From Eutreptiella sp. 'Long Island Sound 2002' (Eukaryota > Protista > Euglenida), in the NCBI GenBank assembly GCA_964036045.1, contig OZ038378.1:29946001-30010000 (forward strand): DNA of 64,000 nucleotides, given 5' to 3'. Below the pieces are notes generated by a model. The model did not search any database. It saw only the letters and a list, made by a program, of their open reading frames with translations, and was not told the origin of the DNA. Within the stretch, counting starts at the first letter, position 1. Every line of letters begins with the position of its first letter. A program made the position numbers and the translations under genes. Below are positions 1 through 59,949 of this stretch, piece by piece.

Positions 1-891
1 GGGACCACACACAGGCATGTGCTACTGATTTTCTTGCGCACAATACTTGTGGCACACGTGCCAGTAGTGCAACCACAACAACCGCAAGGTTCGGCCTCAC
101 CATGCATCCTTGGGTCAGTTACCACCTCTCCCTTTTGCAAGTGCACTGCCACATGAATGCGCATCCTTGCCAAAGCAATGGCCGCTCCACAAAAGAAACA
201 AAATTATGTTGCTTCCGCGGGCCGCACGTTGGTATGTGCCACACCAGTGCATGGCTCTGCACGCAACCGAGGACAATTTGGCACCTTTGCGGTTTTCACA
301 AAGGCAGATAGGGTGCCCAGTGGAATGAGCCAACAACCATCGGCATCCATTTGGGCATCCAAAAAAAACGACATGCCCATTCCGAAACTCACATTGCGGA
401 CCACACCGTCCCGTCCACCGCAACAAAATCGGATCGTTGGTCATGGCGACAAAATGAAAAAATTGACCTGTTACTTAGGCGTCACAAGTTGCCCACCCCC
501 CACCTGGCGCTATGGCCCACGGAAGTCCATGTTGTAATGAGGGGAAAAGTATGTGAAAAGGGGTGTTATTTTTTGGGTATCCAAACCCCTCTGGTGGCAA
601 CATGCAAAAACAAGGTGTGTATTTCAAATATATGCCATTATTTGCATTTCTAGAAACACACAGATTTTCAAAATAAAGACATTCAATCCCCAAAATATAG
701 TGTTGTTTTACATTTAGACCACTGCATTCCAGTGGGGGGGGGGGGCTGCCTATTTTTCTCTCCCCTTTGTTCGAGCTTGATCACAGAACCCCCCTATACA
801 CCACAGATGAGGGAACCCCAAACATACCTTTCATTGAAGCACACAGAAAACTATCCCAAAGCATGTACTTGTATTTCCTATTTTAACCAAC

Positions 892-1215
892 CTGGCCGAA
901 ATTTCGGCCAGCTCTTCGAAAAATGTCCAAACACATGGTCCTATTTGACAGACAGGCCTAAGCTGGCCGAAATTTCGGCCAGGTCCATCGAAACTCCGAA
1001 TATGATCACTGAAATGGGTACCTAAGACAATAGACATGAGCAAGGAACACAGGAGCAGTGACATTTGAACAGGGTGTGCAACATAATATACTCAATTACA
1101 AGCAAATACTTGCCACCTGACGAATCAAAGCAGACTTTTGCAGTGCCTATGGGGAAACACAATAATAAAAGGCGGAAGAGGCTGAGGACTGCATGCTGGC
1201 CGAAATTTCGGCCAG
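892..1215. repeat. Cluster of 20-bp palindrome CTGGCCGAAATTTCGGCCAG (892, 963, 1196)
   Basis: Three perfect copies read directly; first spacing 71 bp. Confidence 0.95.
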
Positions 1216-1254
1216 ACTTCATACTGACAGGCAATATAAGCAGCAGGACTGGCA

Positions 1255-3844
1255 TTAGCGCTTGCGCAGACCAGATGCACGGGGCTTCTTAGCACCTGTG
1301 TTAGGAGGAGGCTTGGCAGGGGCTGCAGCACCAGGCTTGGCAGTGGCAGAGTTCTGTGACTGTGTGTTTCCACCCTGGGATGGTGAAAAATGATTCACAA
1401 AAGTATTCATACCTTTGCCAGTAGGGGCAACAGTGCCTGAGGAGGAAGCTGGGGTGGCCTGAGCGCACTGCGTGCCACTGGGTGAGGGGGCAGGGGCAGT
1501 TTTGGGTTTCTTCTTTGGAGTGTGTGTCTCTGGTTGCGACTCTGCCTCCCCATCTTGCTCCTCAGGATCCTCATCTACATACCTAACCCCAGAACAATCC
1601 ACAGGAAAACCTGCCCCCAAGTCGTGGTACACATCCTCCCATGACTTGGGGGGGGGCACGTGTTGGTGTTGGTGATAGCTGCTCTGATGGACTGAACAAA
1701 CTCATCAGGCACAACAGTCTCCTCACCCAAAAGGGCACACACAACATTACAGTCCTTGGAAAACCTGGTAGACATCATGCTTGCAAAATACACAGACAGA
1801 GTCCCTAGCAAAAACCAGTTGCCTGCCCGTTCTGGGACCGGAACCAGGCTCAAAAGAAATGAGAATATCTCAACAGGCATCACAGACGACATGGGTCCTT
1901 CAGTAAAAGCCACGTAACGGGGCAGCCTGTTATCAAAGGCAGTGGCAGAACAAACGGAAACCAGATGGGACGTAGAAGTGTACAGCGGGGTCTTGCTTGA
2001 CAAATTGTAAATTGCAACATCACACTGATACATATCCTTAGCCACAGTGGCCTTCAAAGCAGCAACAGTGGCTTTCACATCAGCAGACTCACCCGCAATG
2101 AACACAGGCACACCGGACAAAAGCAGCTGCGCAACCAGGTTATGCAAACCAGCTGTATAGAGGCGGGGCACCTCAATGACACAAGCAGCAAAGGGCAGTG
2201 AGCTAATGATACTGGGAAAAGGGACTCCACAACGCATTGCCATCAGTTCCACACGGCCTGACTCTGCAATGAGTTTGCCTGTGCTTGACTCAACGAGGGA
2301 CTCCCTAGCACACTGGATACTGACCAGACCAGTATCAGATTTTTCACAAACAGGCTTAGCAACAGGCTTCTGCAACAATCCCCGCAACCCCTCATATTTG
2401 GGTTCCTTCCAAAGAGGGGCCTTAATTACTGCTGACCACGGGGGCCAGGGGTTTTCTTCAGTCCAGGTCCAACTGCCATAGGCTACCTTCAGGTGTGATG
2501 TCATAGCGCGCTGCCTTTTGGCCATCTCGATAGTACCAAGTGTAGCTGCAGACAGGTGGTGTCACAGGGTGGGCTCCTATTGTGCATTAATTGAACGACA
2601 CACAAGCTGGCCGAAATTTCGGCCAGGTCGGTCGATTTATTCGAATACAAACCCCTGTTTGACCAAAACATACCTCTGGTGTTGTTCACAAGCCCATTGG
2701 TAACCGCCTCGGGATGAAGAATGTGCCAGGACCACATCTGGGCCTTTTTAACATCTTTTATAATTTTTTTGAGACCAGGTAGGGTACTTTTTGTCCCATC
2801 CATGTAACCTACGATGTCGCGAAGTCGGTCAGGCGTGATGCCTTCCACTTCCTTGAACGTACCCAGTGCGGGATGTAGTCCACGCTTTTCCATGGCTGCC
2901 ATGGCGTCTACTGAAGCAAGACCCACAAATTTCACCAAACGCCCAACGCCACCCCACCGTTTGGCAACAGCACTCTGCACAGGAGAACATGTGGAACACA
3001 GAAGCTGGCCGAAATTTCGGCCAGGTCGATCGACAAAACCGAATTAATAAACGAAACACACCACAGTGCCTTCCTCGGCAGTAACACCACACTCTTCAAG
3101 CATAACAGTAATGTGACGGTACAGGGTGTACTCATTGGCATCCTCATCCTCAAGCCTATCCAGGAGTAGGGACATTCGCTCCGATGTGGTGGATGCTGAG
3201 CCAGCAGTGGCCTGGATTTGATGTAAGCCTGCAAGCCGGCGCCTAGTCCGCAGGGGGCAGTCCTGTTTGACTTCATAACCACCAAATACCAGGGTCCAAT
3301 CCGGAGTCTCCATATTTTTCATCTCAAATTCGGTCTTGTGTTTTTGGGCAGCAGTGTAAACATGCTGACCCCCCAACAGAACCCAGCGAGTGGCTGTGCA
3401 ACAGGAATATTCGTAACAGCAGGGTCGAAAATTCAGACGCGAAAACGGTACTATCGAGAAGAATACCACAACACACATACGAGTGACTTTATAAAAAAGA
3501 AAATCCTGGATGTAATCCACAGGCGGGGCTGCCTTCAGATCGTCGTAGCGGCGTTGCACGCGATCATCCGAAATCCTACGGACCTGCCCAAATTTTCGGT
3601 CGTGGTCGATAATAATCTGATCCCACCGAACCTTTATTTTCGTCGTTGACGTAACCCAGTCGGATAACTTGATGGAGGATGATGAATTTTTCTTTGGTGC
3701 GGCCTTAGGCTTCTTTTGAAGTCCCTCTGTGCTCGCCTGGTCCTCTTGAGACTGGGATTGCACTTGAGATTGCCCATTGTCTGCTGCAGGCTCACCATCT
3801 GGCGAAACAGCCATGTCCTGTGATACCCCTCCAGGCTCAGTCAT
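1255..3844 (-). CDS. ParB/Srx-like N-terminal domain protein, about 762 aa, 4 exons (3481-3844, 3062-3393, 2674-2974, 1255-2545)
   Basis: Three GT-AG introns (3394-3480, 2975-3061, 2546-2673; donors GTATGT, GTGTGT, GTATGT) join the ORFs in frame. ParB-like motifs VRWDQIIID..KFGQVRRI and WVLLGGQHVYTAA, then PLRTRRRLAGLHQ. A +1 shift is needed at the G9 run 1648-1656. AG acceptor 11 nt before the ATG. Confidence 0.7.
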
Positions 3845-3963
3845 AAAATAAAGGGCTACAGGGCAACATTTCATGAAGGGGAGAGTTCCCAGATAGCAAA
3901 TAACAAGCACAGATCAACCAAAAAAGGACCAAAACGGACTGCCGGACAGGAAAATCGGATAAC

Positions 3964-4122
3964 CTGGCCGAAATTTCGGCCAGCACTGCTCTGCATGTCA
4001 AACCACTGTGTACAAATACCATTCTGAGAGGCTGGCCGAAATTTCGGCCAGAACCTTATGTCATTTGTGTTCTGGGGGTAGCCATATGACAAAACAACAA
4101 GTCTGGCCGAAATTTCGGCCAG
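3964..4122. repeat. Intergenic cluster of 20-bp palindrome (3964, 4032, 4103)
   Basis: Three perfect copies, spacing 68 and 71 bp, between the transposase end and the ParB-like start. Confidence 0.95.
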
Positions 4123-4214
4123 AAAAACATGAAACAGCAAATAGACACACCAAAATCACTGGCAATGCGTGGCAGAACCCATACCACAGTGACAAACACA
4201 GCTGCAAACAGAAA

Positions 4215-6435
4215 TCAGTCCCAGTCCTGGGTATCCACACCGATGTGTTCCGCCTCATCTAGGGCTTCAAAGGAGGCAACGCTGTCTGCATCACAATCAA
4301 TATCCTGGTCACTATCACAAGAGTCGACAGCAATGGAATCATCAGGGGCGGGGGGGGGGGGGGGTACTGGGTGGGGGGGGGGGCGGGGGGGGTACTGGGG
4401 GGCCTCTGGCTCGGGGCTTCGGGGGTGGCTTTGGGGGCAAGGCAATTCCACCAGGAGCAGCAGTAGCAGCAGCAGGCGGTGCACGGTTGGCAGCACGAAT
4501 AGAAGCATGTGCAGTACGCAACACCCCTTGCTCGGCAGCAGTGCGGGCAGGTGCATTTGTCTGTAAAAAATCCTCAACACCCATAGGAACCCTGGTACGC
4601 GCAACCAGATTTTGGATTGCATGCAACGGAACCACTTTTAAACGGTCTGTGGTGATTCGTGTCCTAGACATGGTACCGGGGAACGTCAAATCCTCAACTG
4701 CATCCAGTCTTCTCACCTCAACTTTATAGTCCGGAACGGGAACACAAATGGGCAGGCTCTGTGTATGGGCTGTCAGGATGAATTGTTTAAGATTGGCAGA
4801 GAACATTGCCACGGATCTCTCAGTCAGCACACCACGCAAAACTTTCTCTCCCGGTTGGACAGGGGGAAGTGTCAGAAATAAATCAGACAACTGTTGGACA
4901 CTAGTACAGGCAGTGTTGCGGCGACAGTGGGCTGAGAACCGACTCAGAAGTGCCTCACCCAGCTCCTCAGAGTGGATACACCCTAGGGAGGCGGAATGCC
5001 ATTGACTCCAAAACAAAAGAGCAACAGCGGTGGTTTTCACATACTCCGTGGTTAACTGTTCCTCGGGCTTTAGGATGTTCAGCATGAGCAGTAGTAGGGA
5101 CATCTCAAGTGCCTGCTTAGCTACAATACCGGAACCTGCCCCCCGTCCCTCCCAGTTGCACTCACGAACCAAAGTCCGAATGCTGAAAGCAGCTGGACAG
5201 TATGTGTACAGCAAAGCCTTAAGGGCTAATAACATACGCAAACCCTTGCGCTGAATGGGTGTCAAGTCCCGCTGGCTATTGAGCAGGGAAGTGACGCGCT
5301 CATCTAGTCTGCCTCTATTGGACGATGTGGCTAGCATGAGTCCAAGCAACGTCTTTTCCATATGGATGACCTTGACCTTGCGAGGGAGGATAGACCCAAC
5401 CTGAAGGCTGTTCCCATGCTCCAAAAACTTAATGAACGGCGGGAACGCCCTGTAGATCAATTCAACGCAATACTTATAGCTATGCCATAGTCCGTACACC
5501 AAAGGAAAACCGAACAGTAATTGTCATACATTCCAGGGAACATAAGCAGCACCATAACACAGCTTAAGTAGGGCAAAGTGTATTTTCATGTCCACAAGCA
5601 GCGGAACGCAGTGTCTGGTGCGGTGTTCCACACATGACAAATCAACCACGAGTTGCAAAAGCTCTTTGTGTGTGCCGGAGCGGAGCTCAGACAGGAAAAA
5701 GGGTCTCCAGTTGAGGGAACGGACATTTTTTCTGGCAATATCCAAAGGAGCACGAACCCAAACTCTCTGAATACCTTGGTTGGCAACATCAATACGATCA
5801 AACAATGCTCTATGTGAGGGAAAGATGTCATCAGCAACCTTTGGTACCCTGGCCTCAATTTCGGCCAGCTCCGGCAGACCCCGGTATGCAAGTAGGGCAG
5901 TAGTGTGCAAAACAGCAACAGCTGTGCAGTTTAGGGTTAAGTCGGGTGAATGGGGATCAGCTCCCGACCTGTAACGCCTCAAGTTATCAAACCATATACA
6001 AACTTGCCTACGGTGCATGGTGTTCCACAAGTTGTGTGCTGCTAGTCCAGCACGATGGTGAATGGACTCCTGCTTAGTGTTACACTGACCAAGGACTCCT
6101 ACCTTACGGCGTTGGCGGCAGGACATAATACCCCAGTTGTAACCAGACCCACAGTTAGAGTATGGGAGGGCCATACGGCGCAGCAGGCAGTATAGGGCAT
6201 GGAACTGTGACAAAAATGTCATGTACCATCGTGGGGGCTTCTTCTCAGTGGCGGCAGCCTTCAACTGTGTCAAGGAGTACCGGCTCCTGCGATTCTTCCG
6301 CAACAAGAGGCAGAATTGCAAAAGCTTTTGCAAAGTCCCACCACGTAATGCATTTCGCAACAGCCCTTTGGCTGTAGTAGCAAAAGCACCAGTAACTGCA
6401 GCATGTACAACATTGACAGTAATAGCAGAAGACAT
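4215..6435 (-). pseudogene. DDE-type transposase, Academ/DUF6589-like, about 740 codons, one nonsense codon
   Basis: ORFs 5524-6435 and 4342-5502 are in the same frame, separated only by TGA at 5524-5526; this aligns to Arg in the 40-42 kb paralogue. Motifs IWFDNL ... LLVDMKIHF ... VYGLWHSYK ... HSEELGEALLSR. The acidic C-terminus (to 4215) is reached by a frameshift in the G-run near 4345-4400. Confidence 0.7.
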
Positions 6436-6506
6436 TAATGCTGAGACAAGAAAACAGTTATGTAGGAGTGTATGGTGTAATACTCATGAACAACGACAAT
6501 TGCAAG

Positions 6507-6807
6507 TTGGCCGAAATTTCGGCCAGGTGTGTTCAAAGGGGAAATAATTGCTTAAATGTTCAAAAATAGGAAAAGCCGGCCGAAATTTCGGCCAGACCGC
6601 CCAAAAACCAAAATATAAGTGCTTGAATAGTGAACAGACCAAAAAGCTGGCCGAAATTTCGGCCAGCCCTAAGAAAAATGAAAATAACTATGCCTATTCA
6701 CCAGGAAACCAAAAAGCTGGCGGAAATTTCGGCCAGAAGGGTCAAAAACTGCATATACACATAGTTGTTTGCAATGTTACCCAAAACCTGGCAGAAATTT
6801 CGGCCAG
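6507..6807. repeat. Regularly spaced array of five 20-bp palindromes (6507, 6576, 6647, 6717, 6788)
   Basis: Period 69-71 bp, with 49-51 nt A-rich spacers; one perfect copy and four with one mismatch. Confidence 0.95.
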
Positions 6808-7391
6808 CTTCAGAAAAACGTCAAATACAACACACTAGAAGACGGGGATACACAAGGCTAACACATCAACACGTATTTCAACGGGTGTCACACAGCTCTG
6901 CCAACAACTTTGGTCCCATACGTCAAACAACATACTCAAAGTAGAAATGTAGAATATTGTCAAATCGCGCGTGTACGGGGTCCTAGAGGGTGGGCAACTT
7001 GTGACGCCTAAGTGTTACGGGGATGGCATGTCCTGTCGCAAGCGCCTCCTCAGTGGTACCATAAACCCGTGCACCGTCAACCAGGGATGGATCTAACTAG
7101 GGGGGTGGGTGTCCCTCCCCCCCCCCTTGTTGTGACGAGGCGTCACGATATGTGTCACGAAAAAACCCGGTCACAGATTGAGCCACGCAGGGTACCAAGA
7201 GGCAGGCAGCACACCCCTTCCAGAGAGGCATTCAATGCAAACCATTGCATAGTCCAACAAACAGTTTTTTTTTGTTTCTTGCTAGTACACTAGGGTTCTT
7301 ATTCACTGTCACTGTGCACCACGGTTCTTATTCACTGTCACTTTCACTGTCAGTACCACTTTCCTCGTCACTGACACTAAGGGCGCTTGAG

Positions 7392-9700
7392 CTAGAAAGA
7401 GGACAGGGAGCTGCCTGAATCTGAGAGCTGTTCCAGGTTATCAACATACTCCGCAGTTTCTGGCACAAGGCGTTCCCTGGCTTGTCCTTTTCCCTTGTCC
7501 TTTCGAGGCTTCCTCACAATTTGAGAAGATCGCCGCCGCCGCTGTGCCGTGCTACCCCATGACCGAGCCACTAACTCATACGGGTAGCCATCGGCATCAA
7601 CATCCTCGGCCCCAATTAAATGCAACCGAACCATGGGCCAGCTCATTCGGTTGCGCAAGGCTGTCATGATGCGGTTCAGGGTTGAAATGGCCCTCTCCGC
7701 ATCATAGGATGATGGTGAGGCAACCGCCCCATACAACCTCAGGGACATGGGCAGGCTTTCTATGGCTACCAGTGCCTGCCAAAACTTAATGAATGTGTCC
7801 ACACCATTCATCTGTGACTTGTTTGCCTGAGGAAGATCAAAATACCTTTTTTTGGCAAGCCCAAAATGCTTGTGAGCGCCATACAAATTAGGGCAGGCCA
7901 GCCCCCATTTTTTTTTCTGATGCAACCACCTTGTCCATCTCCTCTGGTGTCACTGTTGCAATTTGCCAGGTCCTGAAATCTGCAACTTGCAGCTGGGTGT
8001 ATGCCTCATTTTGGAAGCTTTCCTCTTGCTGTTGCAATAGCTTTGTCAACAGAATCGTTTTCGTCACATCAGCGCCCCCGACCCCTTTACTGTCCAACAC
8101 CCAGCCATGCAAAACCGCCCGTTTGACCTCTTTTCGCACAACTAAATTGTGACGCAACCGCCTCTCATATGGACCATGTTTATTTTGGAGTTCACGCAGC
8201 TCTTCTTTCACTGTGCGTAGCACGCTCGCTATTCGTGCCGCACAGGCATTCCCTTGTTGTCCTTCAAAAGAAAGCTGCAACAGGGATGTCAACACGTCTT
8301 GCGGCACTGCAGTGTAAACATGGAATTTTAGGGAGGCCAGAAGAGTGACAATGACATACAGTTTTTCATGCTCTGTTTCTCCTTTTTTTGTGCCTTGGAA
8401 CCCGGTTTCAACTTCGGGGCTGTCATTTTTTTTAGTGCACGCAATTTCTTGCTCGGGACCTTGTGTGTGGCTGCAGCATTGGAGAGGACAACCTCTCTTG
8501 ATCAAGCAAAGGGTGGGCCCAACCCACCGCTGTACAACCTTTCCCTGCCAACTCGCCGATTTCTCATTTTCCTGCTGCATCAAAGCATCAACCTGCCCGG
8601 CGACAAGGTTACTTTTGCGCAGCATTGCGCTAAGGTTGCGCAGCCCTGTCAAAATCTCACTGTGAAAAGCCAGCCCCTCTATAGCCGTATGCACACTGGA
8701 TTCACATTCGTGGGCCACATCGGTAAACTGCCAACAATCAACGGCGCCCAAAGCCTTCACTTTAGCACTGAATCCAGCTCTGACGCCGGTCATTGCACTA
8801 GCGTTGTCTGTAGAGCAAACAACTAATTTACGCAAAACAGCTTTCACATCTCCAGGCTCAGACGACGCGTGTTGCAAAAGCCATTGCAACTGCTCCTAAA
8901 ATCAGGCCGCCAGCCGGTCTGCACTTTGGGGCTTTTCTACGAACTCCTGACTGTCAACTTGAAAAAAATCTTCAATACTACGGGTTACCAACTTGTCGCA
9001 AGTGTACTGTTCCCGATAACATATCAATAAAGCGACATTTGACTATATCGGGGGGGGGGGGGGCGCATGGCCTTTTTATGCGCCCCGTCTATTATCAACC
9101 CCCACATTGGCGTGTCCAACAATCCCGTTGCTGTGATGGACCGTTCCCTGGAGACAATGTGGTTCATCAGCTGTTGTGCGTGCTTACGGCCACTACCGAA
9201 CACAGATTAAAAAACAAGGCGCATCACAGTCCTGTGGCAGGGTAACCAGGGGAGTGAAGTCAGTGTCAGGCCTCGTGTGTTTCAACGGATGCACCGCAAT
9301 GCGCAAGTTGCCAATGTCCTGCTTCCGTTGCCAATCCTTTAGAGGAGTCTCTGCGTCACATCCCGCTGCTGCTCTTAAGTGGGTTGTGCTCTGCAGCCCA
9401 ACAATCTGTGGAAACCATGGTGGCACAACAAGCAGCAACTAAAAATGGGCCTGCACGCGTGCCACAGCACAGAAGCAGTGCACCCGGCTGATGTTGTGTG
9501 CAGCACGAAGCTGTTTAGCGGCTGCGCGAGCATCATTGAGACCACAGGCAGCAGATTGCAGCACAGCCTGCACGACGTCACTGAAATTCACCTCAGGAAG
9601 CACAGTCTTGACGCACAACACTTGAAAGCTTGGCACAGGACCCAGAAAGCCACGAGCACTCCCTTCAGACAGCAATGGTGCCAGTGACTTCCCCATAATG
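7392..9700 (-). pseudogene. Degenerate hAT-family transposase
   Basis: WGLIIDG (first D), VCSTDNASAMTG, DVAH (CxxH position), and C-terminal dimerisation-like SSYDAERAISTLNRIMTALRNRMS. Multiple stops and frameshifts; termini not found. Confidence 0.75.
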
Positions 9701-12589: not shown

Positions 12590-14030
12590 GAGGGCAGAAT
12601 CAGATCGGGGGGCAAAATCACAAGTGACCCACAAGTGGGCAAGATGGCTACATAACCTCTGCCGCCTGGGGGGTCCCCACCGCTTCTGAGCGGGGGGGGC
12701 AGAATCAGAAGTGGCCCACAAGTGGGCAAGGTGGCTACATAACCCCTGCCGCCTGGGGGATCCCCACCGCTTCAGAGCGGGGGGCAGAATCAAAAGTGGC
12801 CCTCAAGTGGGCAAGGTGGCTACCTGACCCCTTTTTCAGGCGCCCAAAAGAGGGCGGAATTGCTACGTAACCCCTTCTTTCTCGGGGATCCCCCAAAAGG
12901 GGGGATAGACATGGCCCACGTTGGGCCGGCGCAAAAAGGCCTCTAGGCGGCGGTCCTTAAGGGCGGTCTTTAACAAAAAAAAATCTCGTCCCTTAAGGAC
13001 CGCCCTGGCTCCATTCCTTTGGTGTCCGGGGCGGTCCCCAAAAATTCGTCTTCTTTGTCCAACACAAGTAGTGCACCACATGGTTGCAGTAAAAAAAGGG
13101 GTTGCACCGCTTTGGAAAAGAGATTGCAACACATCCTGCGCAGATGAGCCAATCTGTGGGTGTTGCTCAAGGATGGTTGTGGCACGCTTTGTAACCTTTT
13201 CGCAAACCTTTTTGAGATCAACACCATTTGTTGCTTTACATTTCATCAAGGGGACCGCCCCTACGACAACTTACCTAAAAAAAACCACATGCATACGAGC
13301 AAAAGAAAGGGCAATAAAGGGAGCAAAATCAGAAGTGGTCCCCAACAAAGGGGAATCAAATCAGAGTCCCTAACCCCAACTCAAGGGGCCACGCAACAAA
13401 GCGTGGATTGCGAGTCCCTAACCCCAACTCAAGGGGCCACGCAACAAAGCGTCGATCGTGAGTCCCTAACCCCAATTCAAGGGGCCACACAACAAAGCGT
13501 GGTTTGCGAGTCCCTAACACCAACTCACGGGGCCACGCAATAAAGCGTGTATTGCGAGTCCCTAACCCCAACTCAAGGGGCCACGCAACAAAGCGTGGAT
13601 TCGGAGTCCCTAACCCAAACTCAAGGGGCCACACAACAAAGCGTGGCAGTAAAAAAAAAAAAAGGAAAGAAACTGGGAGGCAAAATGTGTTCCCCAACAA
13701 AGAGGGACAAAATCAGAAGTGGTTGCCTCACCCTTGCCTTCTCGGGGGCCCAAACAACCATACTCGCGCCTACCATACTTGGGGATCCCCAAATAAAGGG
13801 GGACAAAATCAGAATTGGCTCCTTCACACCTGACTTCTTGGGATTCCACAAGTGGGCGGAAATGCTATGTCACCCTTGCATTCTCGGGATCCCCAAAACA
13901 ACGGGGGACAAAATCAGAATTGGCTCCCTCAGCCCTGCCTTCTCGGGGGCCCAAAAGAGGGCGGAAATGCTACTCCACCCTTGCATTCTAGGGGGTCCCT
14001 AGCCAAGGGGACAAAATCAAAAGTGGTTGA
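12590..14030. repeat. Composite repeat family (CAAAATCAGAA..CCCCTGCCTTCTCGGGG units of about 60-110 bp); further copies near 14580-14700, 15100-15150, 16080
   Basis: Recurrent caaaatcagaa(g/t)tggc and ttctcggg(g)atcccc motifs read directly. Confidence 0.75.
13364..13647 (+). repeat. Minisatellite, 6 x 48 bp (GAGTCCCTAACCCCAACTCAAGGGGCCACGCAACAAAGCGTGGATTGC)
   Basis: Unit starts at 13364, 13412, 13460, 13508, 13556, 13604. Isolated related units near 15015 and 44980-45050. Confidence 0.95.
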
Positions 14031-15893
14031 ATTGGGGGCAAGGACAAAACTTTGGATGTGCAGTCCAAAAGAATACCACCAAAAAATGTTTTCGCAGAAG
14101 TGGTGTGTCTGCGTCGAAAAACACCCTTAAAAACCCCCCACAGACCATTTTTAAAACACGGGGGGGGGGGGTTCCAAAACCCCCCACGCTATCGGATTTC
14201 TCAGAAACCCCCCCCCCCTAGCTAGCCCTGTGGGCATGGAGCTGATGCGAAAAGCTTTTTTTTTGACCCTCTGTGTGCGTTTGGAATCCTGATTTGGGAT
14301 GTGGGTACTTGGCCATATGGGCTGCTTTATCATCTCTCATGTGCACAATGTGCAACGCATATGAATAGAGTTTGCCATACTCACGTACCACCATGTCCAA
14401 GTGGGGCATTTGGTGAAACCTAGTATGTACGTAGCAAATACTAGTAAAATGTAGCAAAACCTAGTAAATATTTTCCGTTTAAATTTTTTTTTGAAAAAGT
14501 TTTTTTTTACTAGGTAAAAAAAGCAAAATTTTGAAAAAAAATTTCCTTACTAGGTCAATTCCCGGGGGGGGGGGGGGGTTGCAAAGGGGGACAAAATCAG
14601 AATTGGCTGCCTAACCCCTGCCTTCTGGAGGGCCCACAAGTGGGCGCAAATGCTACGTCACCCCTGCATTCTCGATGATCCCCAACAAAGGGGACAAAAC
14701 AAAAACACAAAAAAAAACAAAAACAAAGATTCCCCCATGATGTCTATGACTCAGCCACAGGGTCAACAGATTACCCCCAATGGGGTTTGAACCCAGGACC
14801 TTCCACTTGCAAAGGCACTGCTTTACCCATTAGGGTATGAGTCATTTCTGTAGTTTATATGCACAGGGGTGGTATTGATATTTGGGCCAATTTGGTTTGC
14901 ATCCATTATTTGGTTCTCCTGAAAAAACTGAGTATTTTGAGTATAGACACATGGGTGAAGACCCATTTTTTCGCCCTCTACTAGTTCAAGCAAAATTCCC
15001 ACCTGTGAATTGTGAGTCCCTAACCCCAACTCGAGGGGCCACGCAACAAAGCGTGGGGATCAAAAGAAAAAGGAAAGAAGGTGGGAAGGGGAGCAAAAGC
15101 AGAAGTGTTCCTCAACAAAGGGGAACAAAATCAGAAGTGGCTGCCTCACCCCTACCTTCTCGGCCAAACCATCCCCCGAGGCCCCCCCCCCATCCGATGT
15201 GTAATACTTGGGGGCTCGGCCACCCCTTGGTCCCTTGACCCCCGGTTGGTACGTCCAGTCTAACCCACATGGCTTTGTGTATTTCTTTAATTTTCCTTAC
15301 TCCAAATTCCCCCCAAGTGTCCGCTGAGCGCTCACAAAGTAAGTCAAGGGTAAGTGACAGTCCCGGGTTTGGGTTTAAGGCCAGGTTGCCCTATCCTCTT
15401 CGCTGTCCGGGTACAGCGCGGTGGCAGGGGAACAAGTCCCACGCCTTACCCCTTCCCTACCTCACAGTAGAATGGGTGCTTTGTGTTGTGGAGGCGTGCC
15501 TCCAGGATGTGGATTCCCAGCAGTGCAGTGTTTGGTATATGGGGGGGGGGATGAAGGGCGGGGGTGCCATAAAGGCTGTGTACGTGTGCCAGGTGGTACT
15601 TCCAGGTGTACACACCGGTTTGAGTTTCCACGAAGATCTTGTCCACATTGCGTTTCCACAGACAGTGGGAAGTGGGTGAGAGTGGAACAGTTGTACCTCT
15701 GCCTAGGAGTACTGCTTCTGCCCTCTGCATTCACAGGAAACCTTTCCCAAGACCGTGAAGCTTGGAAGTTGCTCACCAGCACCATATGTGGGACAACCCC
15801 CCCCCCCCCAAGTAGCCTTGTCACCATGCTCCCATTTCGAACCTTGAAATTCCATTTCCATTCTTCGATTTCCATGGGGCGTGTGGATGTATT

Positions 15894-16055
15894 GAAGATA
15901 ATAAATCTACCGCCCTCCGAAAACGGCCCAAATGGCCGAAGATAATAAATCTACCGCGCTCCGAAAACGGCGACAATGGCCGAAAATAACAAATCTACCG
16001 CCCTCCGTAAGTGGCCAAAGTAGCCAAAAACAATAAATCTACCGCCCTCCGAAAG
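15894..16055 (+). repeat. Tandem repeat, 4 x 44 bp (GAAGATAATAAATCTACCGCCCTCCGAAAACGG...)
   Basis: Unit starts at 15894, 15938, 15982, 16026. Confidence 0.9.
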
Positions 16056-16151
16056 TGAAAAGCCCCTCAGAGCGGGGGACAATATCAGAAGTGGCCAACA
16101 AGTGGCCCGAAAGTTTTACAGCCTAGTTCTTTTGTTTTTGGCGGTTTTGGG

Positions 16152-16355
16152 ACCTAGTAAGAAAAAAAACTTTTTTTTTACTCGGTTGTGAAACCTAGTA
16201 AAAAAAAACTTTTTTTTTTACTAGGTTCTGAAACCTAGTAAAAAAAAAGTTTTTTTTTACTAGGTTCCCGATACCTAGTAAAAAACTAGTGAACCTAGTA
16301 AACTGTTACCTAGTAAAAAAAAACTTTTTTTAAAAAACTTTTTTTTACTAGGTTT
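16152..16355. repeat. Array of ACCTAGT-A(n)-C/G-T(n)-ACTAGGT hairpin units; related cluster at 14420-14556
   Basis: Self-complementary units at about 40-bp period (16152, 16193, 16233). Confidence 0.85.
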
Positions 16356-38225: not shown

Positions 38226-38860
38226 TCAGATTGTGGGATACAATAGATTGCAGTTGGCCTCATGCTGAATACCCACAAGATGTGCAGTAAGAGGCTCGGG
38301 TAGTATGCCGAGGGCAAGGATGAAGGTACCAGGTAGTCCGTCAACGCAGAGGTTTGAATGGACTTGTATGTAGTGCCTACTCAGGAACAAAGTGGCAAAT
38401 GTTTTTGTGATCAACGCTCTGCTATGGTGGGTCGGTGGGCGACACTGCGACGGATTCTTGCGAGGCGGGGTCGCTGAACTCGTCGTGACTGACCGTACTT
38501 CAGCTCCTCATCCAAAATAAGCTTGCTGACATGAACGTATTTCCTGGCAATGATGGATGTTCTAACTTGCTGAGCCTCTGTGTCTGCACCCACCAAGATG
38601 CACGGCCGCGATTTCATTTTGGTCCTGTCCTCCTGCTCCTGCTCATCTTCCTCCTCTTCAGATTCAAAACTCTCCTCCTCCTCCTCACCAAAACCACTTT
38701 GGTCACCATCAGCATCTGCTTCACCGCCAGAATTGTGCCCCGTTTGTCATCTTCCTGTTATTCACCATCAACGCCACTGACACCCGAGTCATCTGCAGGC
38801 ACTTCACCAGATTCCGTTGTGTGGCCTACTGCCTAGTCCGGGTGCTCAGGCTCCACATGC
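38226..38860 (-). pseudogene. ParB-like gene remnant of element 2
   Basis: After an acidic N-terminus, KYVHVSKLILDEELKYGQSRRVQRPRL aligns with KIKVRWDQIIIDHDRKFGQVRRISDDRV of element 1. PEPLTAHLVGIQHEA aligns with PLRTRRRLAGLHQIQA. Confidence 0.7.
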
Positions 38861-39756
38861 GGATGACAGGGGTCCTCAATTTTACTTGATCCTACAGAGA
38901 GCAAGCAGGAGCCACAAGTAGGAGAAAAATAGCCCAAAACACCAAGAAATAGCCCGTCCGAGGCACCTTTTGGAATGGTGATTCGCTGTCAACAGTGAAA
39001 GTGTGTTGTAGGCAATTGGGTTCAAAGCAGTAGGTGTCTTTGGTTATCAACAAGGCACTAAGTTTCGTTTGTCACTATCACGCCAGACACTGGGTTCACC
39101 TTGTTTTGGCTATTTTCAAATTCCTTAATTTGTTGTTGAACGCAAGAGTCAGAGCAACTAGCAGGTCCTGAAACTGACATTGTGTACCATGGTGCTGCAA
39201 CATAGTGACATCTACGTCTCATTTACTTGCACCGGTTCCTTCTGCCAAGGGATGCACAATAAAGGCGCAAATTAATCTTGCACTGGTGCAAGGCTACCAT
39301 GAGTGATATCATGCTGGCACCTTTTGAATGCGCGGTACATGGACAACAGACCCACAACGGGCAGGGGGGGAGGGAAACCATAAGCGTCATGTACCACGCG
39401 CGCAGAACGTTGCACTGGATGTTATTCAGCGTATGCACCGTCCCCCATTTTGGACCCTTGTTTCCCAAGGGTTTCCTTGTCAACAGTGAAAGTGCTCTGT
39501 GATTGAATGCTATTCGTGTCATTATGATCTACTCACCATTGCATAATTGTGCTGTAATACATTCCAGCCTGCTTCACCTTGTGTTTCACAGTTGACATTG
39601 AAAGTCACTCCCTGTCCCCCGTCCGAATGGCAATTGCACTGGACACACAGGCATCAGCAAACCCGGGGTACGTGGACACATTGTGCGGCCGCAACCATTG
39701 GCAGTATGACAGGTCTGTTCGCCACTATACATCCGTGTTCCGGAGCATCACCAGCC

Positions 39757-42157
39757 CTACCCAATTAAGATATAGTCGTCGTCATCGCTTTCAGAATCAA
39801 CATAGCACAACCAATTGTCACCCAATGCCACGGCATCAAGGTTGACATAATCTCTGGAGTCCGATTGAGACCCGTTTTGGTCACCAACGCCACCTGCTCT
39901 TTTGCATTTTCTAGGTACCTTTTCCCAAATGGGCAGTACCAACGCCATAGCATCACGTGGTAGCATTCCGCGTAGGCGTGCGGCTGTTCCTGCATAGTCA
40001 TCAAAAAAGGAACTGTAGTCACGACCATGGGGCGGTTGTTGGTGCTAGATCATCTGATCAGCTACAGCCCGGCGATCTGCCTTCTCACACGCCTTGACAG
40101 AGAGGTAAAAAAGAGTGTGAAGGCTTTGGTGCAGTAGGATATACTTCGACTCAACCAAGCTTGTTGAGTCCATAAGGGCAGGTGGAAACTTGAAACTGTC
40201 TGGCCAAATGTTGGCACCTGTTACACAAGCGTCCTTAGGATTATCCTTCATCTCACCTGTTCTAATATCTACAAATGGGGCCGTGCCTAAGGTCAGACAG
40301 TGCAATAGATTTTACAACCTACCTTGCACCGTTTGGACACAACCCAATGTTATATTGGGCTTCTGCTGAAACGTGGTTCCTTGTGCAGCCTTTCTCATGG
40401 TTAACAACACAGACTCGTATTGCTCCAGTGCGGTAGCACTGAGATCATGCTGTGATGCTTTCACAAGACGAGACAGCATAGATTCCCCTTTTTCTTCAAC
40501 ATGTGCAGTACCTGGCAATGCATCATGGAACGAACTCCACAGAAGGAGAGCAATGCGGATCGTGTTTTGATAGTTGCCGACACTACGTGTTGGCTTGATC
40601 TTCCGCAGCGGAAACAGGCCGCATTCTAAAACCTTGCGTGCTGCAACACCAGTGCCACAGGCCCGATGTCTCCTGGAGCAGTAACGCACCATTATCCCTA
40701 ACTGCAAGACAGCAGGAATATAAGACTGCAATAATTCCCGCAGGGCCTCCCAACGCTCCTTTCATAGGGAAGTTTCACTGTCAACAGTGAAACCCCGGAA
40801 GCCACGGTCGAATTGAGACTGCAGTGCGGGATACGCAAGGTAGCACGAGAGAATGAGCCTCTCTAGGACAATGAGAGGGGGGTATTGGGACACCCGTGTG
40901 GCAGTTGGATCCATTAAGAAGCAATCATACCCCATGCAGATAAAAACAGGTGAAAAAGCCTCGTATAAAGCGGAGACACACGCCTTGTATGCGTGCCAAA
41001 TCCCATAGACAGGGCATATGTCACGGAGCGCACCGCGTACTAGGGAAGCAACATGCTCCCTATTGTATACAACCTTCGCAACCCTCCACCATATGTTCAT
41101 GTCACAAAGTAATCCCTTCGCTGGGTTCCGGTTACCAGGATTGTCTTGCAATCACTGCACCAAAGCGCCCCCGAATCCCGCCGTCTTGGTGACATTGATG
41201 TCCCATAACCCGTATGGCTACCATGATGAAGTCCTGGGGTTGCCCCGGCGAATATCCAACGGGCAGCGAAGAAGACCAAGGGACAGTCCATCCGATCCCA
41301 GGTCCTGCACAACAGTCAAAAACTCAGCAACCGAGTCCCACATATGCAGTCCCACGCCCTTGACCCGTGTTGTCCATTTCTCTGCAGAAGGCCACCTAGC
41401 GTACGACAATCTCCCGACAGACCTTTGAGGACAGCGACAACAGTGCACGACAAGGAGATGTCCCGTGGTCCATCCGGATTTTTGCTGTACCGGCTCTTTC
41501 AAAACTGGTCTGCCCATGTCACATAGCATCCTTGTGTCATTTCTTCGCGGATGGGCTCTTGTGCAAGGGCAACCCGGTTGGTCAATGGTGGTTCCCGATG
41601 GAGTATAAGTCCACTTTTCCGCAACTCAAGCCGCTTTTCCTTGGTCACTGCTGTTAATACCCCTGTCCTGGGGACCGTTTGTGCCACTGTCATTGGCTTT
41701 GCCAGCACCAGCATGCAGCTGAAGAGCTTGAACGCAGCAAGCACAAAGCGCAGTAGCAATTGGTTGGACCCACGACTCGACCAGTATTGCTTTAGTTCCG
41801 CTATACTTCGTCTTGTTTGAGGATTCCGACGCAGCTCCAGGGCCATCTCCACAAAACTCAAAGCTGGTCCGCCCCCCAAAGCACACTCCACCAGTGAGTC
41901 CCCGTCTTGGTACATGTTAGCCCGGTCCAGGACGTCATACAACCTCGAGCACAAGTCTCGTAGACTGAATGGGGAGGCAATGCTGTCAGTCGGAATGCCC
42001 TCTGAGGCGTCAAAGGCAGATCATATACAGACAGAACAAGCAGACAGCATTCAGTGGTTTCATAGTTGACAAGAAAAGTTGGTTGTGAGAAGGTGTCAGG
42101 TGGCACAACAGACTGGCAGAACTTGTGCAGAGGGTGAAAGACAACGTGTGGTGCCAA
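39757..42157 (-). pseudogene. Transposase remnant of element 2
   Basis: LVECALGGG..LRRNPQTRRSIAELK, VTWADQF, RCPLDIRR, LLCDMNIWWR, VYGIWHAYK, HVEEKGESMLSRL and an acidic tail are all collinear with 4215-6435. Several frameshifts. Confidence 0.8.
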
Positions 42158-44239
42158 CAGGAAGTGGCTACGAGTGGTTTCACTGTTGAGAGTTAAAGTC
42201 CTTGGGATCCAGTGCTACGCATGCCTCCCACCTGAAAGGCAGGTGGACAATAGAGTGAATGCAAGTACATTAGGGGGGCACAACGTCAATAAGATCCTCA
42301 CCTGGCACCCCACTCTCCCCCCATGCACCACAACCACAGGGAAGCCACAAGGACATAACGGATCTGGCACAACTCTATTGATGCCTCCAAGTCCTGGTGG
42401 GGTACTTTTCCTACCACTAGGGCAAGAAATCTCGTGTCGCACCACATGGTCAACTATATGCTACAAAACATGTCTACAAACTACCGGTTCGGTAGTACTA
42501 GGGGGCACAATGTTGGTCGGTCTCAGAAATTGGAGGCCCCCGCCCAGGCAGTTCCAGCCCATGTTCTCAGTGTGCAATGATCCCGCCATCTGGTAGTACT
42601 AGTAGTGTACCCCCCCTGCAACGGGGCACTTACCATGCCGAGTGGGTAATTGAAGCTTTACGCTCAGCACAGGACGACCAAGGTGCAGAACACCCCTTGC
42701 ATATCAAAGCCACCCTCGAAGATTTGGGGGCAGCCATTCACCTCTCATTATAGAGTGGCTTGAGATTTCCCTCTAAGTGAGTGCGCAAAACGTTCTTCAT
42801 GTTGATCGATCAAGGGAAAGAATGTGAGGCAAAATCGCACATGATAGAAGGAAACATCGAGAAAGCTCGAAAGGTCCTTCAGGGACACATGCGAATCAAC
42901 AAATCAAGTTGACAAAGCCAAACATCTACACTCTCTTGCACAATCTTGATGAGCATCTAGGTGATACTATCCGACAACAACAAGCTGCAGTTGTACGGCA
43001 ACAACAAGTGCTCGTGGAACCATGAGCCAAAATGGATCGCCAGCTTGCCATTGCAGTTGGCTCTTCACCATTAAAAAAGAAAGAGTGCCATGCACCAATT
43101 CAAACACTCCCTGAAACACCATGAACACCACAACAAACCCATGCCATCATCCTAGGTCTGCCGCAAACTAATACACAACCTGTACATGGCATGAGAGCAA
43201 ATGAACAAATTGCTCACGCAAGAGGCCTGCAGATTGCTGCTTGACTCTAAGCAGCAGATGGCAGCTTGACTCTAAGCAGCAACAACCGATGCTGCGATCT
43301 CTATGGGAGACGCCTTTCCTTGCAGTGCAAAATGTTTTTGTTCGGAATTCCATAGGAATGAAACAAGGGCTGGTTTGAGCGGGGCTTCAAGCGGTGCGGT
43401 GGCTTGGAGGAGTCGTTGGAGGACTATAATGAGGTCCTCAAGGTCTTGATGGTCGCTGATATTGAGCACTTGTTGGGCCATTGGCAAGTCAACTAGGGGG
43501 ATGATTCCCTGGGCTGGCGAATTGTTGCACGTCGCCATTTTGAACAAAGGGCTCCTCAAGAATGTCTTGGCGTAGGGGGAGGCAATTACCCGGGGTAGTC
43601 GAGGTTCAAGAGGGGTTCGGAGTAGAAGTTTCAGAGTGTGTAGCGACCAGTGTATGCCAAGCGAAAGTGTGCAGGGGGTGTGGGGTACAGACCCCAGTCA
43701 CAGATCTTCAAGAGGCGCCCGTAGCAAAAGAAATCAAGCATCCAGAAATACGTAGTAGATCTTGGCGTGACGCAGATGGTCTACACAGTGTTGCTGCCCA
43801 GTAGGGCTGAGGAATGTGTGTGTAAGATTGATGGGCCTCAGTCTTTGCTAGAGTGACAGGGGTGACGATGTCTCAACAATGCTCTGGGGCATGGTCCCAA
43901 GGGAGCGCACGGCCAGAAGACATCGAAAAAAATAGACGCCCAAAAAGTGTTTTGGTGGGGAAAGGGGGGGTCCGAAGGGTTGAGGGGGGCAAACTCATGC
44001 AAAAAAATACATACAATCCAGACCTGGGGGTGGGCTGAACCTTCCCCAAGTACAGGCTTGACCATTGGTTTGTGGTCCCCTCAGCCTCCATACCTCAAGG
44101 CCACATGCACCTCCACTGCCATGCACCTCCACTCTTACTTGGATGTGCATCGTCCAGGTGGGCTTGTAGCGGCCACCGGGCTAAGTATGAACTTGGGTGG
44201 GCGCGCTTTCAACTGGGGCAGCCAGGCTTTTGATTTGAG

Positions 44240-59600: not shown

Positions 59601-59949
59601 GCACAACGTTGGGGCGACTGCCGTAAAGGACGGCAGCTAGTTTTTCGGACGAGTCGCAGTCCTTGAAGAGGTGGAACGACAGGGAGGCAGCCTCTGTAAC
59701 TCCACTCTTCAGCACCACTTCGTCCTAGATGATGTAATCGGCGTCATCGATGGCTGCCAAACACGCCAATTGGCCGGCGTCGGCAGGGACGATGACCTCA
59801 TCGCCTGGTGTGGCCGGACGGGCTTGGGTGTCCTGGACACTCATGCGGTCAGGGGACAGGGAGGTGACGTCGGTGGCAAGCTGTCAAGGGCCAGCGGCCC
59901 GGGCAAGCATGGACAAAAAGAAACCGAAAAAAAATAGACACTCAGAAAG
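56660..59949 (-). mobile_element. 5' part of an L1/Tx1-like LINE: ORF1 (59910-58246, disrupted) and ORF2 APE endonuclease (from 58249)
   Basis: APE motifs SQNVNGL, AIQEPH, LCADHNS, RRIDRIH, NSDHRAI. The ORF1 stop TGA (58246-58248) overlaps the ORF2 ATG (58247-58249). Confidence 0.85.
59925..59949 (-). other. Relic spliced-leader exon (CTTTCTGAGTGTCTATTTTTTTTCG)
   Basis: 25 of 26 nt match the Euglena SL exon ACTTTCTGAGTGTCTATTTTTTTTCG as recalled from the literature; 14 nt upstream of the LINE ORF1 ATG at 59910. Confidence 0.85.

Follow-up and report, generated by a model that had tools for sequence, protein, structure and literature searches.

Regularly spaced palindromes in the genome of the euglenid Eutreptiella sp. 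'Long Island Sound 2002' (GenBank assembly GCA_964036045.1) were analysed in a 64,000-nt stretch of contig OZ038378.1 (positions 29,946,001 to 30,010,000, forward strand), hereafter called the window, whose first nucleotide is position 1. In this study, we report that all 14 palindrome sites of the window lie inside one 6.5-kb cut-and-paste DNA transposon (474-7012), which carries a gene for a predicted DDE transposase (open reading frame ORF1) and an accessory gene (gene 2). Judged from its sequence, the feature appears to belong with the binding-site arrays that are specific to individual DNA transposons, and sites and reader may together form a module like that of plasmids. We consider it probable that the palindromes serve as docking sites for a dimeric protein encoded by the element, and that their arrays nucleate a larger complex needed in cis.

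The palindrome array

The array (6507-6807) begins 72 nt upstream of the start codon of ORF1; its other limit is 205 nt inside the element's right end. It consists of five copies of a 20-nt palindrome, CTGGCCGAAATTTCGGCCAG, starting at 6507, 6576, 6647, 6717 and 6788, with start-to-start distances of 69, 71, 70 and 71 nt. In the window copy only the palindrome at 6647 is perfect (1/5), the other four having one private point change each. When up to two mismatches to the 16-nt core were allowed, 14 sites were found in the window, all within 892-6807; the number expected by chance was 0.05, and none of 100 shuffled sequences reached 14.

A sequence-only reading of this stretch had described five palindromes at a 69-71 bp period with spacers of about 50 nt, and had noted that the same period recurs at 892/963 and 3964/4032/4103. 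These positions and spacings were confirmed (71 bp in the pair, 68 and 71 bp in the trio), and spacer length in the array proved constant at 49-51 nt. Its description of the spacers as A-rich, with a recurrent end motif and A-tracts at a constant distance from the palindromes, also held: plus-strand spacers contain 45% A, the element as a whole 28%, and of the four internal spacers three terminate in CCAAAAAG or CCCAAAAC. Four of the five palindromes are followed, 6-7 nt downstream, by a run of A5, and the first by AAA only. The constant A-tract offsets may be an inheritance from a duplicated unit, or may be due to the sense strand being T-rich upstream of the gene.

One pair of neighbouring array units is 73% identical over 71 nt. 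Over the whole array the spacers are 58% alike, against 55% in shuffled controls, while the five palindromes are identical in the family. As the spacer sequences are weakly related, the array is best read as an old tandem duplication of a unit of about 70 bp and not as a series of unrelated spacers; the 20-nt cores apparently stayed identical while the rest of the duplicated unit drifted.

The transposon and its copies

The ends of the element form a perfect inverted repeat of 25/26 nt. The left terminal inverted repeat (TIR), CTTAGGCGTCACAAGTTGCCCACCC, occupies 474-498 (plus strand) and the right one 6988-7012 (minus strand), as found by inverted-repeat and end comparison, and reading of the flanks revealed a 5-bp target-site duplication, TGTTA, at 469-473 and again at 7013-7017. 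Both genes are on the minus strand. The window copy is dead, having an in-frame stop in ORF1 and a frameshift in gene 2. Sixteen further copies of the element were retrieved and both ends were located in 13 of them; each of these 13 has its own 5-bp target duplication, and seven are about 6.5 kb long, the others being internally deleted.

The host genome comprises 2.28 Gb in chromosomes of up to 200 Mb, and the exact 20-mer palindrome occurs in it 6174 times. A first look for the right end of the element gave 1778 candidates in the genome, of which the 40 that were scored were about 98% identical. The element has the features of a class II TIR transposon, namely TIRs with a copy-specific 5-bp duplication, a DDE transposase, dispersed copies and non-autonomous derivatives, and its ends and copies mark it as a young, high-copy cut-and-paste transposon. 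With a relative of the transposase as query, a first look at the host genome yielded 14,258 candidate loci. The transposase superfamily may make up a sizeable share of the 2.28 Gb, and the element family would be a major building block of this euglenid genome.

The last 560 nt of the right end were compared in 14 other copies. All align collinearly at an unchanged length, with an identity of about 98%, and nearly all have the five array palindromes in perfect form. Eight private substitutions were seen in the last 560 nt of the window copy, and four of these fall in four different array palindromes, which make up 100 of the 560 nt (binomial p about 0.04, calculated by hand); this excess could be due to chance, or to faster mutation of palindromes in dead copies.

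The same comparison bears on the CRISPR-like geometry (CRISPR: short palindromic repeats that are clustered and regularly interspaced) from which the sequence-only reading had started, and for which it had named variable versus fixed spacers among genomic copies as the check, identical spacers counting against the idea. The spacers turned out to be fixed, being identical in the 14 other copies apart from scattered point changes. What the array has in common with CRISPR arrays is geometry only, that is, short palindromic repeats with spacers of similar length (about 50 nt), but an adaptive array with acquired spacers should not have identical spacers in all copies examined. In addition, the host is a eukaryote with a 2.28-Gb genome and GT-AG introns, the repeats also occur singly and in pairs throughout a transposon, the window has no Rfam match, and the ORFs near the array gave no match to Cas or defence families, so that neither cas genes nor any Cas-like signal accompany the repeats. 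The identical spacers refute this explanation, which we regard as extremely improbable. In annotation, a regular array of palindromes in euglenid DNA is to be taken as the mark of one of these transposons, and not as a CRISPR-like locus, a satellite or a regulatory RNA gene.

Site layout along the element

Intact copies carry 13 perfect sites and one imperfect site. In element coordinates, the sites of the window copy are at 420, 491, 724, 2135, 2533, 3492, 3560, 3631 and 5377, followed by the quintet at 6035-6335. Near the left end of the element is a pair of palindromes (892-911 and 963-982, spanning 892-982; spacing 71), whose flanks are inverted relative to the right array: three inverted pairs (I1-I3) of 42-65 nt show 71-86% complementarity to it, so that the two subterminal regions mirror each other. 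A single palindrome (1196-1215) lies just downstream of the gene 2 stop codon. Two of the three mapped introns of gene 2, both with GT-AG borders read from the sequence, contain a palindrome, at 2607-2626 in intron 3 (2673-2546, minus strand) and at 3005-3024 in intron 2 (3061-2975, minus strand). A trio starting at 3964, 4032 and 4103 (3964-4122; spacing 68 and 71) occupies part of the interval from the stop codon of ORF1 to the start of gene 2. The imperfect site, CTGGCCTCAATTTCGGCCAG (5849-5868), is within ORF1 codons (LAEIEA); one of its half-sites is intact, and it is unchanged in every copy examined.

Conservation of sites in a gene-less derivative

A 3.9-kb derivative of the element (L049:193-4115; a shorter version at L050:3487-7110) has no transposase gene. 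Its terminal repeats are those of the autonomous element but for one mismatch; it has a 5-bp duplication, and it contains 29 palindrome sites. Nearly all of it is made up of pieces of the autonomous element that bear arrays and have been rearranged, at 74-81% identity. Full-length copies number at least 24, and since these are 97-99% identical, the derivative was mobilised recently. In alignments of the derivative, which is 20-25% diverged, with the autonomous element, palindrome positions are 91% identical (548/600) and other aligned positions 76% (2319/3067; Fisher p = 3e-20), with one gap against 34. That a gene-less derivative keeps the sites suggests that they matter beyond control of the element's own genes.

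Two further observations concern the structure of these loci. L049 and L050 are foldback-like, with long inverted arms about 92% alike that come from duplicated array segments. They also contain a decayed piece of gene 2 with a palindrome in intron 1, an intron that has none in the autonomous element.

Each family has its own palindrome

Relatives of ORF1 bear other palindromes in the same kinds of places, including metagenomic relatives that are about 30% identical in the transposase. The palindrome is TTCGCTCCATGGAGCGAA in the metagenomic relative L029, CCGCGAAAGTTCGCGG (CCGCGAA-AG-TTCGCGG) in L030, GTTCGCGATCGCGAAC in L031, TGGGCACTGCAGTGCCCA in L032 and L048, TGCGCGAGGCCTCGCGCA in L044, L046 and L047, and CTATCGAAATTTCGATAG in L045. 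A decayed sister element in the window itself (38226-42197) has the near-palindrome TTCACTGT-CA-ACAGTGAA. Upstream of the transposase gene, within a few hundred nt, several sites are present in every family. As in the studied family, one site in transposase codons is also found in L029, L030, L031 and L032. Palindromes of about 16 bp, specific to the replicon and carried on the element itself, as would be looked for in a ParB/parS-like arrangement, are therefore present. Dyad symmetry runs through the site centre in six of eight families, and the centres range from AT-rich (AAATTT) to GC-rich (GGCC, CTGCAG).

The terminal tip CTTAGGCG and a 5-bp duplication are common to the studied family and to L048 (the TGGGCAC family), although their palindromes are different. 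With the same tip joined to different palindromes, the ends and the palindromes look like two separate layers of recognition. A tip universal to all families was also considered and rejected, as it was found in these two only among those compared.

The closest sister family found is L045 (G000:C1:185560500-185568500). Its palindrome has the central CGAAATTTCG of the studied family and differs at the outer positions alone, and the two families would form a natural pair for mapping the site positions and protein residues that set specificity. Beside an element of the TGGGCACTGCAGTGCCCA family, at L040:47-375, another palindrome, GGGGGTCTAGACCCCC, occurs seven times, strictly every 52 bp; a further family, with a period of its own, may be the source of this array. 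The decayed sister element of the window has TTCACTGTCAACAGTGAA five times (38982, 39473, 39585, 40774 and 42179); here the spacing is irregular and the 70-bp period is absent.

In L029, four sites at a 69-bp period end 87 nt before the transposase start, and a palindrome pair at 67-68 bp is present in each of four gaps between gene 2 exons. In two of its introns there is also a 113-nt module, at 79% identity. Sites are thus 68-71 bp apart in the three clusters of the studied family, 68-79 bp in the gene-less derivative and 67-69 bp in L029, a relative at about 30% transposase identity with an unrelated palindrome. The sequence-only reading had favoured a bent or phased protein-DNA array, and this part of it was only partly upheld. 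In its favour, the palindromes are better conserved than their surroundings and a spacing of about 70 bp is seen in the three clusters, in the derivative and in L029; against it, the period is family-specific (about 38, 50 or 56 bp, or irregular, elsewhere) and does not correspond to an integral number of helical turns. A universal 70-bp period or helical phasing was accordingly discarded once six other families had been compared; 68-71 bp is equivalent to 6.5-6.8 turns, and at 6.7 turns for 70 bp, neighbouring sites would not be on one face of the helix. As far as these sequences indicate, the close pairing or arraying of sites is the conserved feature, and the exact period appears to be family-typical and partly inherited.

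ORF1 is predicted to encode a DDE transposase

ORF1 (4273-6435, minus strand) is interrupted by a stop at 5524-5526 in the window copy. In the copy L024:953-3124 it is intact, as a single open frame of about 724 aa. No match was found in Pfam, NCBIfam or PDB sequences, and 28 homologues were likewise without a Pfam match. In a library of 1.84 billion proteins, ORF1 homologues form 961 clusters, of which those looked up have no informative name.

The AlphaFold2 model of ORF1 has a predicted local distance difference test score (pLDDT) of 86.6 and a predicted template-modelling score (pTM) of 0.82. Without exception, the top 25 structures matched by it are DDE transposases or the RAG1 recombinase, which is related to them; in most, the RNase-H fold contains a helical insertion. 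Structural Z scores were 9.8 for the P element (290 residues, root-mean-square deviation 5.7), 9.4 for Hermes, 8.1 for HzTransib, 7.3 for ISCth4, 7.2 for Tn5 and 7.2 for RAG1. Residues D150-N151, D232, D282, G315, W317-H318 and E489/E490/E493 are invariant in an alignment of 29 homologues, and the invariant acidic residues are placed in the model like a catalytic triad, with D150 on strand 1, D282 after strand 4 and E489/490/493 in the helix that follows the insertion. On the basis of this model, ORF1 is predicted to be a DDE transposase of a family that has no profile.

Like hAT, P-element, Transib and RAG1 proteins, ORF1 would have an RNase-H-like DDE fold broken by a large helical insertion, and an invariant Trp-His following the strand after the second Asp. 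It is unlike them in having no match at the sequence level, and the terminal repeats of the element do not resemble recombination signal sequences. The 5-bp target duplication is of a size typical of Transib. In the model comparison, Z scores of 7-10 do not separate the hAT, P-element and Transib/RAG1 superfamilies for ORF1. Named superfamilies (hAT, P, Transib, CACTA/Plavaka, KDZ, MULE and others that have Pfam models) were tried and gave no significant profile match; Pfam is without models for the superfamilies Sola, Zator, Novosib, Kolobok, Academ and Dada.

Gene 2

Gene 2 (1255-3814, minus strand) is downstream of ORF1 on the same strand and has at least four exons (3814-3481, 3393-3062, 2974-2674 and 2545 onward) separated by ordinary GT-AG introns. 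It encodes the motif LLGGQHVYTAA, and in the window copy it has a frameshift near 1650. Collinear homologous exons were found in the metagenomic relative L029, where they come after the transposase gene, and in three sister families (L045, L048 and L036), and the motif LGG(Q/A)H is present in gene 2 of all these families. Apart from the transposase, no protein of the element but the gene 2 product is conserved.

Gene 2 was searched exon by exon. Exon 3 gave a weak helix-turn-helix match (HTH_47, E = 0.17), and the list of language-model neighbours included DUF3723 (0.94) and ParB_N (0.90, rank 28), both of which are to be taken as hints only. The motif LGG(Q/A)H resembles GGCHR/DGQHR. Word-based homologue searches with pieces of gene 2 returned matches only from the host genome. 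No 2-oxoglutarate (2OG)-oxygenase domain was detected in profile searches, in which the C-terminal 430 aa received no assignment, and no ParA-like ORF was seen among the ORFs of the element. A DENN/folliculin-like assignment of the C-terminal exon, for which the ESM Atlas scores were below 0.9, was not believed.

Proposed role of the sites and alternative explanations

We infer from the placement and symmetry of the sites that they are bound by a protein. Symmetry running through the site centre suits recognition of the duplex by a dimer, and not a hairpin loop. The gene 2 product is the obvious candidate, since the element has no other conserved protein besides the transposase, and it is the most likely putative binder; the N-terminal helical part (120 residues) of the transposase is a less likely one. 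In every family a palindrome of its own, 16-20 bp long, recurs 8-29 times in all non-coding parts of the element, which are the two subterminal regions, the 5' region of either gene and the introns of gene 2, and occurs once, imperfectly, in codons. In the mechanism that we propose, clusters of 2-5 sites at the family-typical spacing would start the assembly of several proteins into a complex on the DNA of the element itself. This complex would be needed in cis and would label the DNA as that of its own family, and it would help the transposase to act on the right ends, the terminal tip being common between families. As clusters lie directly upstream of both genes, binding would probably feed back on their expression, and feedback control of the two genes is a likely second role of the sites.

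Several observations weigh against this proposal. The conservation test made on the derivative uses overlapping BLAST segments anchored on palindromes; gene conversion among many identical sites could, moreover, mimic purifying selection. Neighbouring sites in other families are 37-39, 48-51 or 55-58 bp apart, or irregularly placed, and the three clusters of the studied family share ancestry, as seen from the homology of their flanks, so that their equal spacing is partly inherited. As to the putative reader, searches of Pfam, NCBIfam, PADLOC and PDB sequences with gene 2 exons and alignments gave no credible match, and the structure model of exons 1-2, built from an unspliced in-frame reading and a 16-row alignment, has a pLDDT of 39.

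Alternatively, the sites may have no function of their own, being relics of a duplicated 70-bp unit homogenised by gene conversion or slippage, or tiny selfish insertions. The array units are recognisably related (the neighbour pair described above), the clusters have common flanking homology, the 113-nt module of L029 recurs in two introns, and spacing varies between families. However, the layout of a pre-transposase array, gene 2 intron sites and one site in codons is kept at about 30% transposase identity, and in each family the sequence has been exchanged at all sites jointly. Conversion would also homogenise the flanks, yet these have diverged almost to random, and the gene-less derivative is almost entirely made of array segments and is mobile. 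We consider this explanation unlikely, and think much the same of a role in nucleic-acid structure, either as RNA hairpins in the leader, the introns or the 3' end, acting in small RNAs or splicing, or as DNA cruciforms or hairpins in transposition or replication. Each site can fold into a 9-bp stem with a 4-nt loop (as DNA, -11.7 kcal/mol, z = -5.3), the array as RNA reaches -119 kcal/mol (z = -8.7 versus shuffles), many sites are in transcribed non-coding parts (introns and 3' end), and introns that are defined by their secondary structure are a known feature of euglenids. Strong folding is automatic for any palindrome, however, and six of eight families also have self-complementary central 4-6 nt, for which a loop has no need; an RNA hairpin role is disfavoured by this symmetry through the site centre. 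With centres that range from AT-rich to GC-rich, easy cruciform extrusion is not a common property either. In degenerate sites the changes are on one side and are not compensated on the other, the site-bearing introns have ordinary GT-AG ends with the palindrome in mid-intron, and no Rfam family was matched in the window.

The sites might instead be read by a host protein, such as a repressor or silencing factor or an insulator protein, or might act as a nucleosome-positioning signal. The regular 68-71 bp spacing with A-tracts at constant offsets, the presence of sites upstream of both genes, and a period that is roughly half a nucleosome are compatible with this. But the palindrome is a different one in each family of the same genome, and one factor would not read at least six unrelated sequences; nor would the element gain from keeping perfect sites for a host repressor, or from multiplying them as in the derivative. 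A host reader is accordingly judged to be quite improbable.

Docking of an element-encoded dimer on family-private sites is thus the explanation that we retain, and a broader form of it may be put forward tentatively. The element could represent a large, unnamed eukaryotic DDE superfamily with an addressing system separate from the terminal repeats. Each lineage would have a private palindrome of 16-20 bp, set in arrays and in all non-coding parts including introns, and a co-evolving, element-encoded reader (ParB-like or otherwise) would recognise it, coat or bridge the element and so determine which copies can be moved by a transposase. Carrying such sites would be part of the reason why the accessory gene keeps its introns. 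If the private palindromes are a self-recognition code, this would explain how sister families with similar ends coexist without cross-mobilisation.

Comparison with known systems

The nearest counterpart in the literature is found in Plavaka transposons of the red alga Bostrychia moritziana, which encode an accessory protein, PAG3, beside inverted-repeat arrays in tandem; the N-terminus of PAG3 is described as ParB-like (HHpred E = 0.29), a 2OG-oxygenase domain is also present, and the protein was proposed by the authors to bind its own element (bioRxiv 10.1101/2025.02.11.637652). Both cases are eukaryotic DDE transposons with an accessory gene and inverted-repeat arrays inside the element. 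They differ in that the Plavaka transposase is of the EnSpm/CACTA type, whereas ORF1 has no Pfam transposase match and is associated with 5-bp duplications; in that PAG3 has a 2OG-oxygenase domain, none being detected in gene 2; and in that the arrays adjoin PAG3, whereas here the sites are family-specific and spread throughout the element, including introns. If the proposed role is correct, the element would be a second independent case, after the red-alga Plavaka, of a transposon with a plasmid-type site-plus-reader module. Literature searches returned nothing on the palindrome itself or on Euglena transposons with these features.

Among plant transposons, arrays of subterminal repeats are carried by CACTA elements (the 12-bp motifs of En/Spm TnpA), Ac/Ds (AAACGG motifs) and Mutator. 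These motifs are in both subterminal regions, overlap the promoter, are bound by an element-encoded protein and are required in cis for transposition. As here, they are many, short and element-specific, and are retained in non-autonomous derivatives. Their length is 6-12 bp, in contrast to the perfect 20-bp palindromes of the present element; they are confined to the ends, whereas the present sites are also found in introns and between genes; and they have no period of about 70 bp.

In bacterial and plasmid ParB/parS systems, perfect palindromes of 13-16 bp are read by a dimer encoded by the replicon, which acts both in DNA handling and in repression of its own promoter, and site sequences vary between incompatibility groups. 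The sopC locus of the F plasmid consists of twelve 43-bp repeats, each with an inverted repeat, and KorB of RK2 has 12 dispersed palindromic operators. The likeness is that palindromes are found both in fixed-period tandem arrays and dispersed over the replicon. Unlike the chromosomal eukaryotic transposon described here, these are prokaryotic replicons with a ParA partner and a role in segregation, and any homology between gene 2 and ParB is putative, sequence profiles being blank. The present element is set apart from all of these systems by its unprofiled transposase with 5-bp duplications, by perfect 20-bp palindromes placed element-wide, including introns, and by the family-private sequence of these palindromes.

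Other features of the window

Adjoining the right end of the element, at 7392-8889 (minus strand), are ORFs of 177 and 333 aa. Their C-terminus resembles by eye a hAT-type dimerisation motif, and a Pfam search with them gave no match; an unrelated transposon may have left them as a remnant. No matches came from scanning the window for Rfam families and tRNAs. An exact match to a 24-nt spliced-leader sequence is present at 59925-59948 (minus strand) and is probably a copy of a spliced-leader RNA gene. The query, a spliced-leader sequence of Euglena gracilis, had 5458 matches in the genome, and its reversed control had none, which marks the host as a euglenid.

A series of unrelated tandem repeats occupies 12600-16345. 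It includes 87-bp units (12600-12832), a 48-bp unit repeated 5.9 times (13364-13646), a 105-bp unit (13782-14026) and a 44-bp unit (15894-16054), as well as a 40-bp unit (16152-16285) that is itself a long A9/T9 palindrome.

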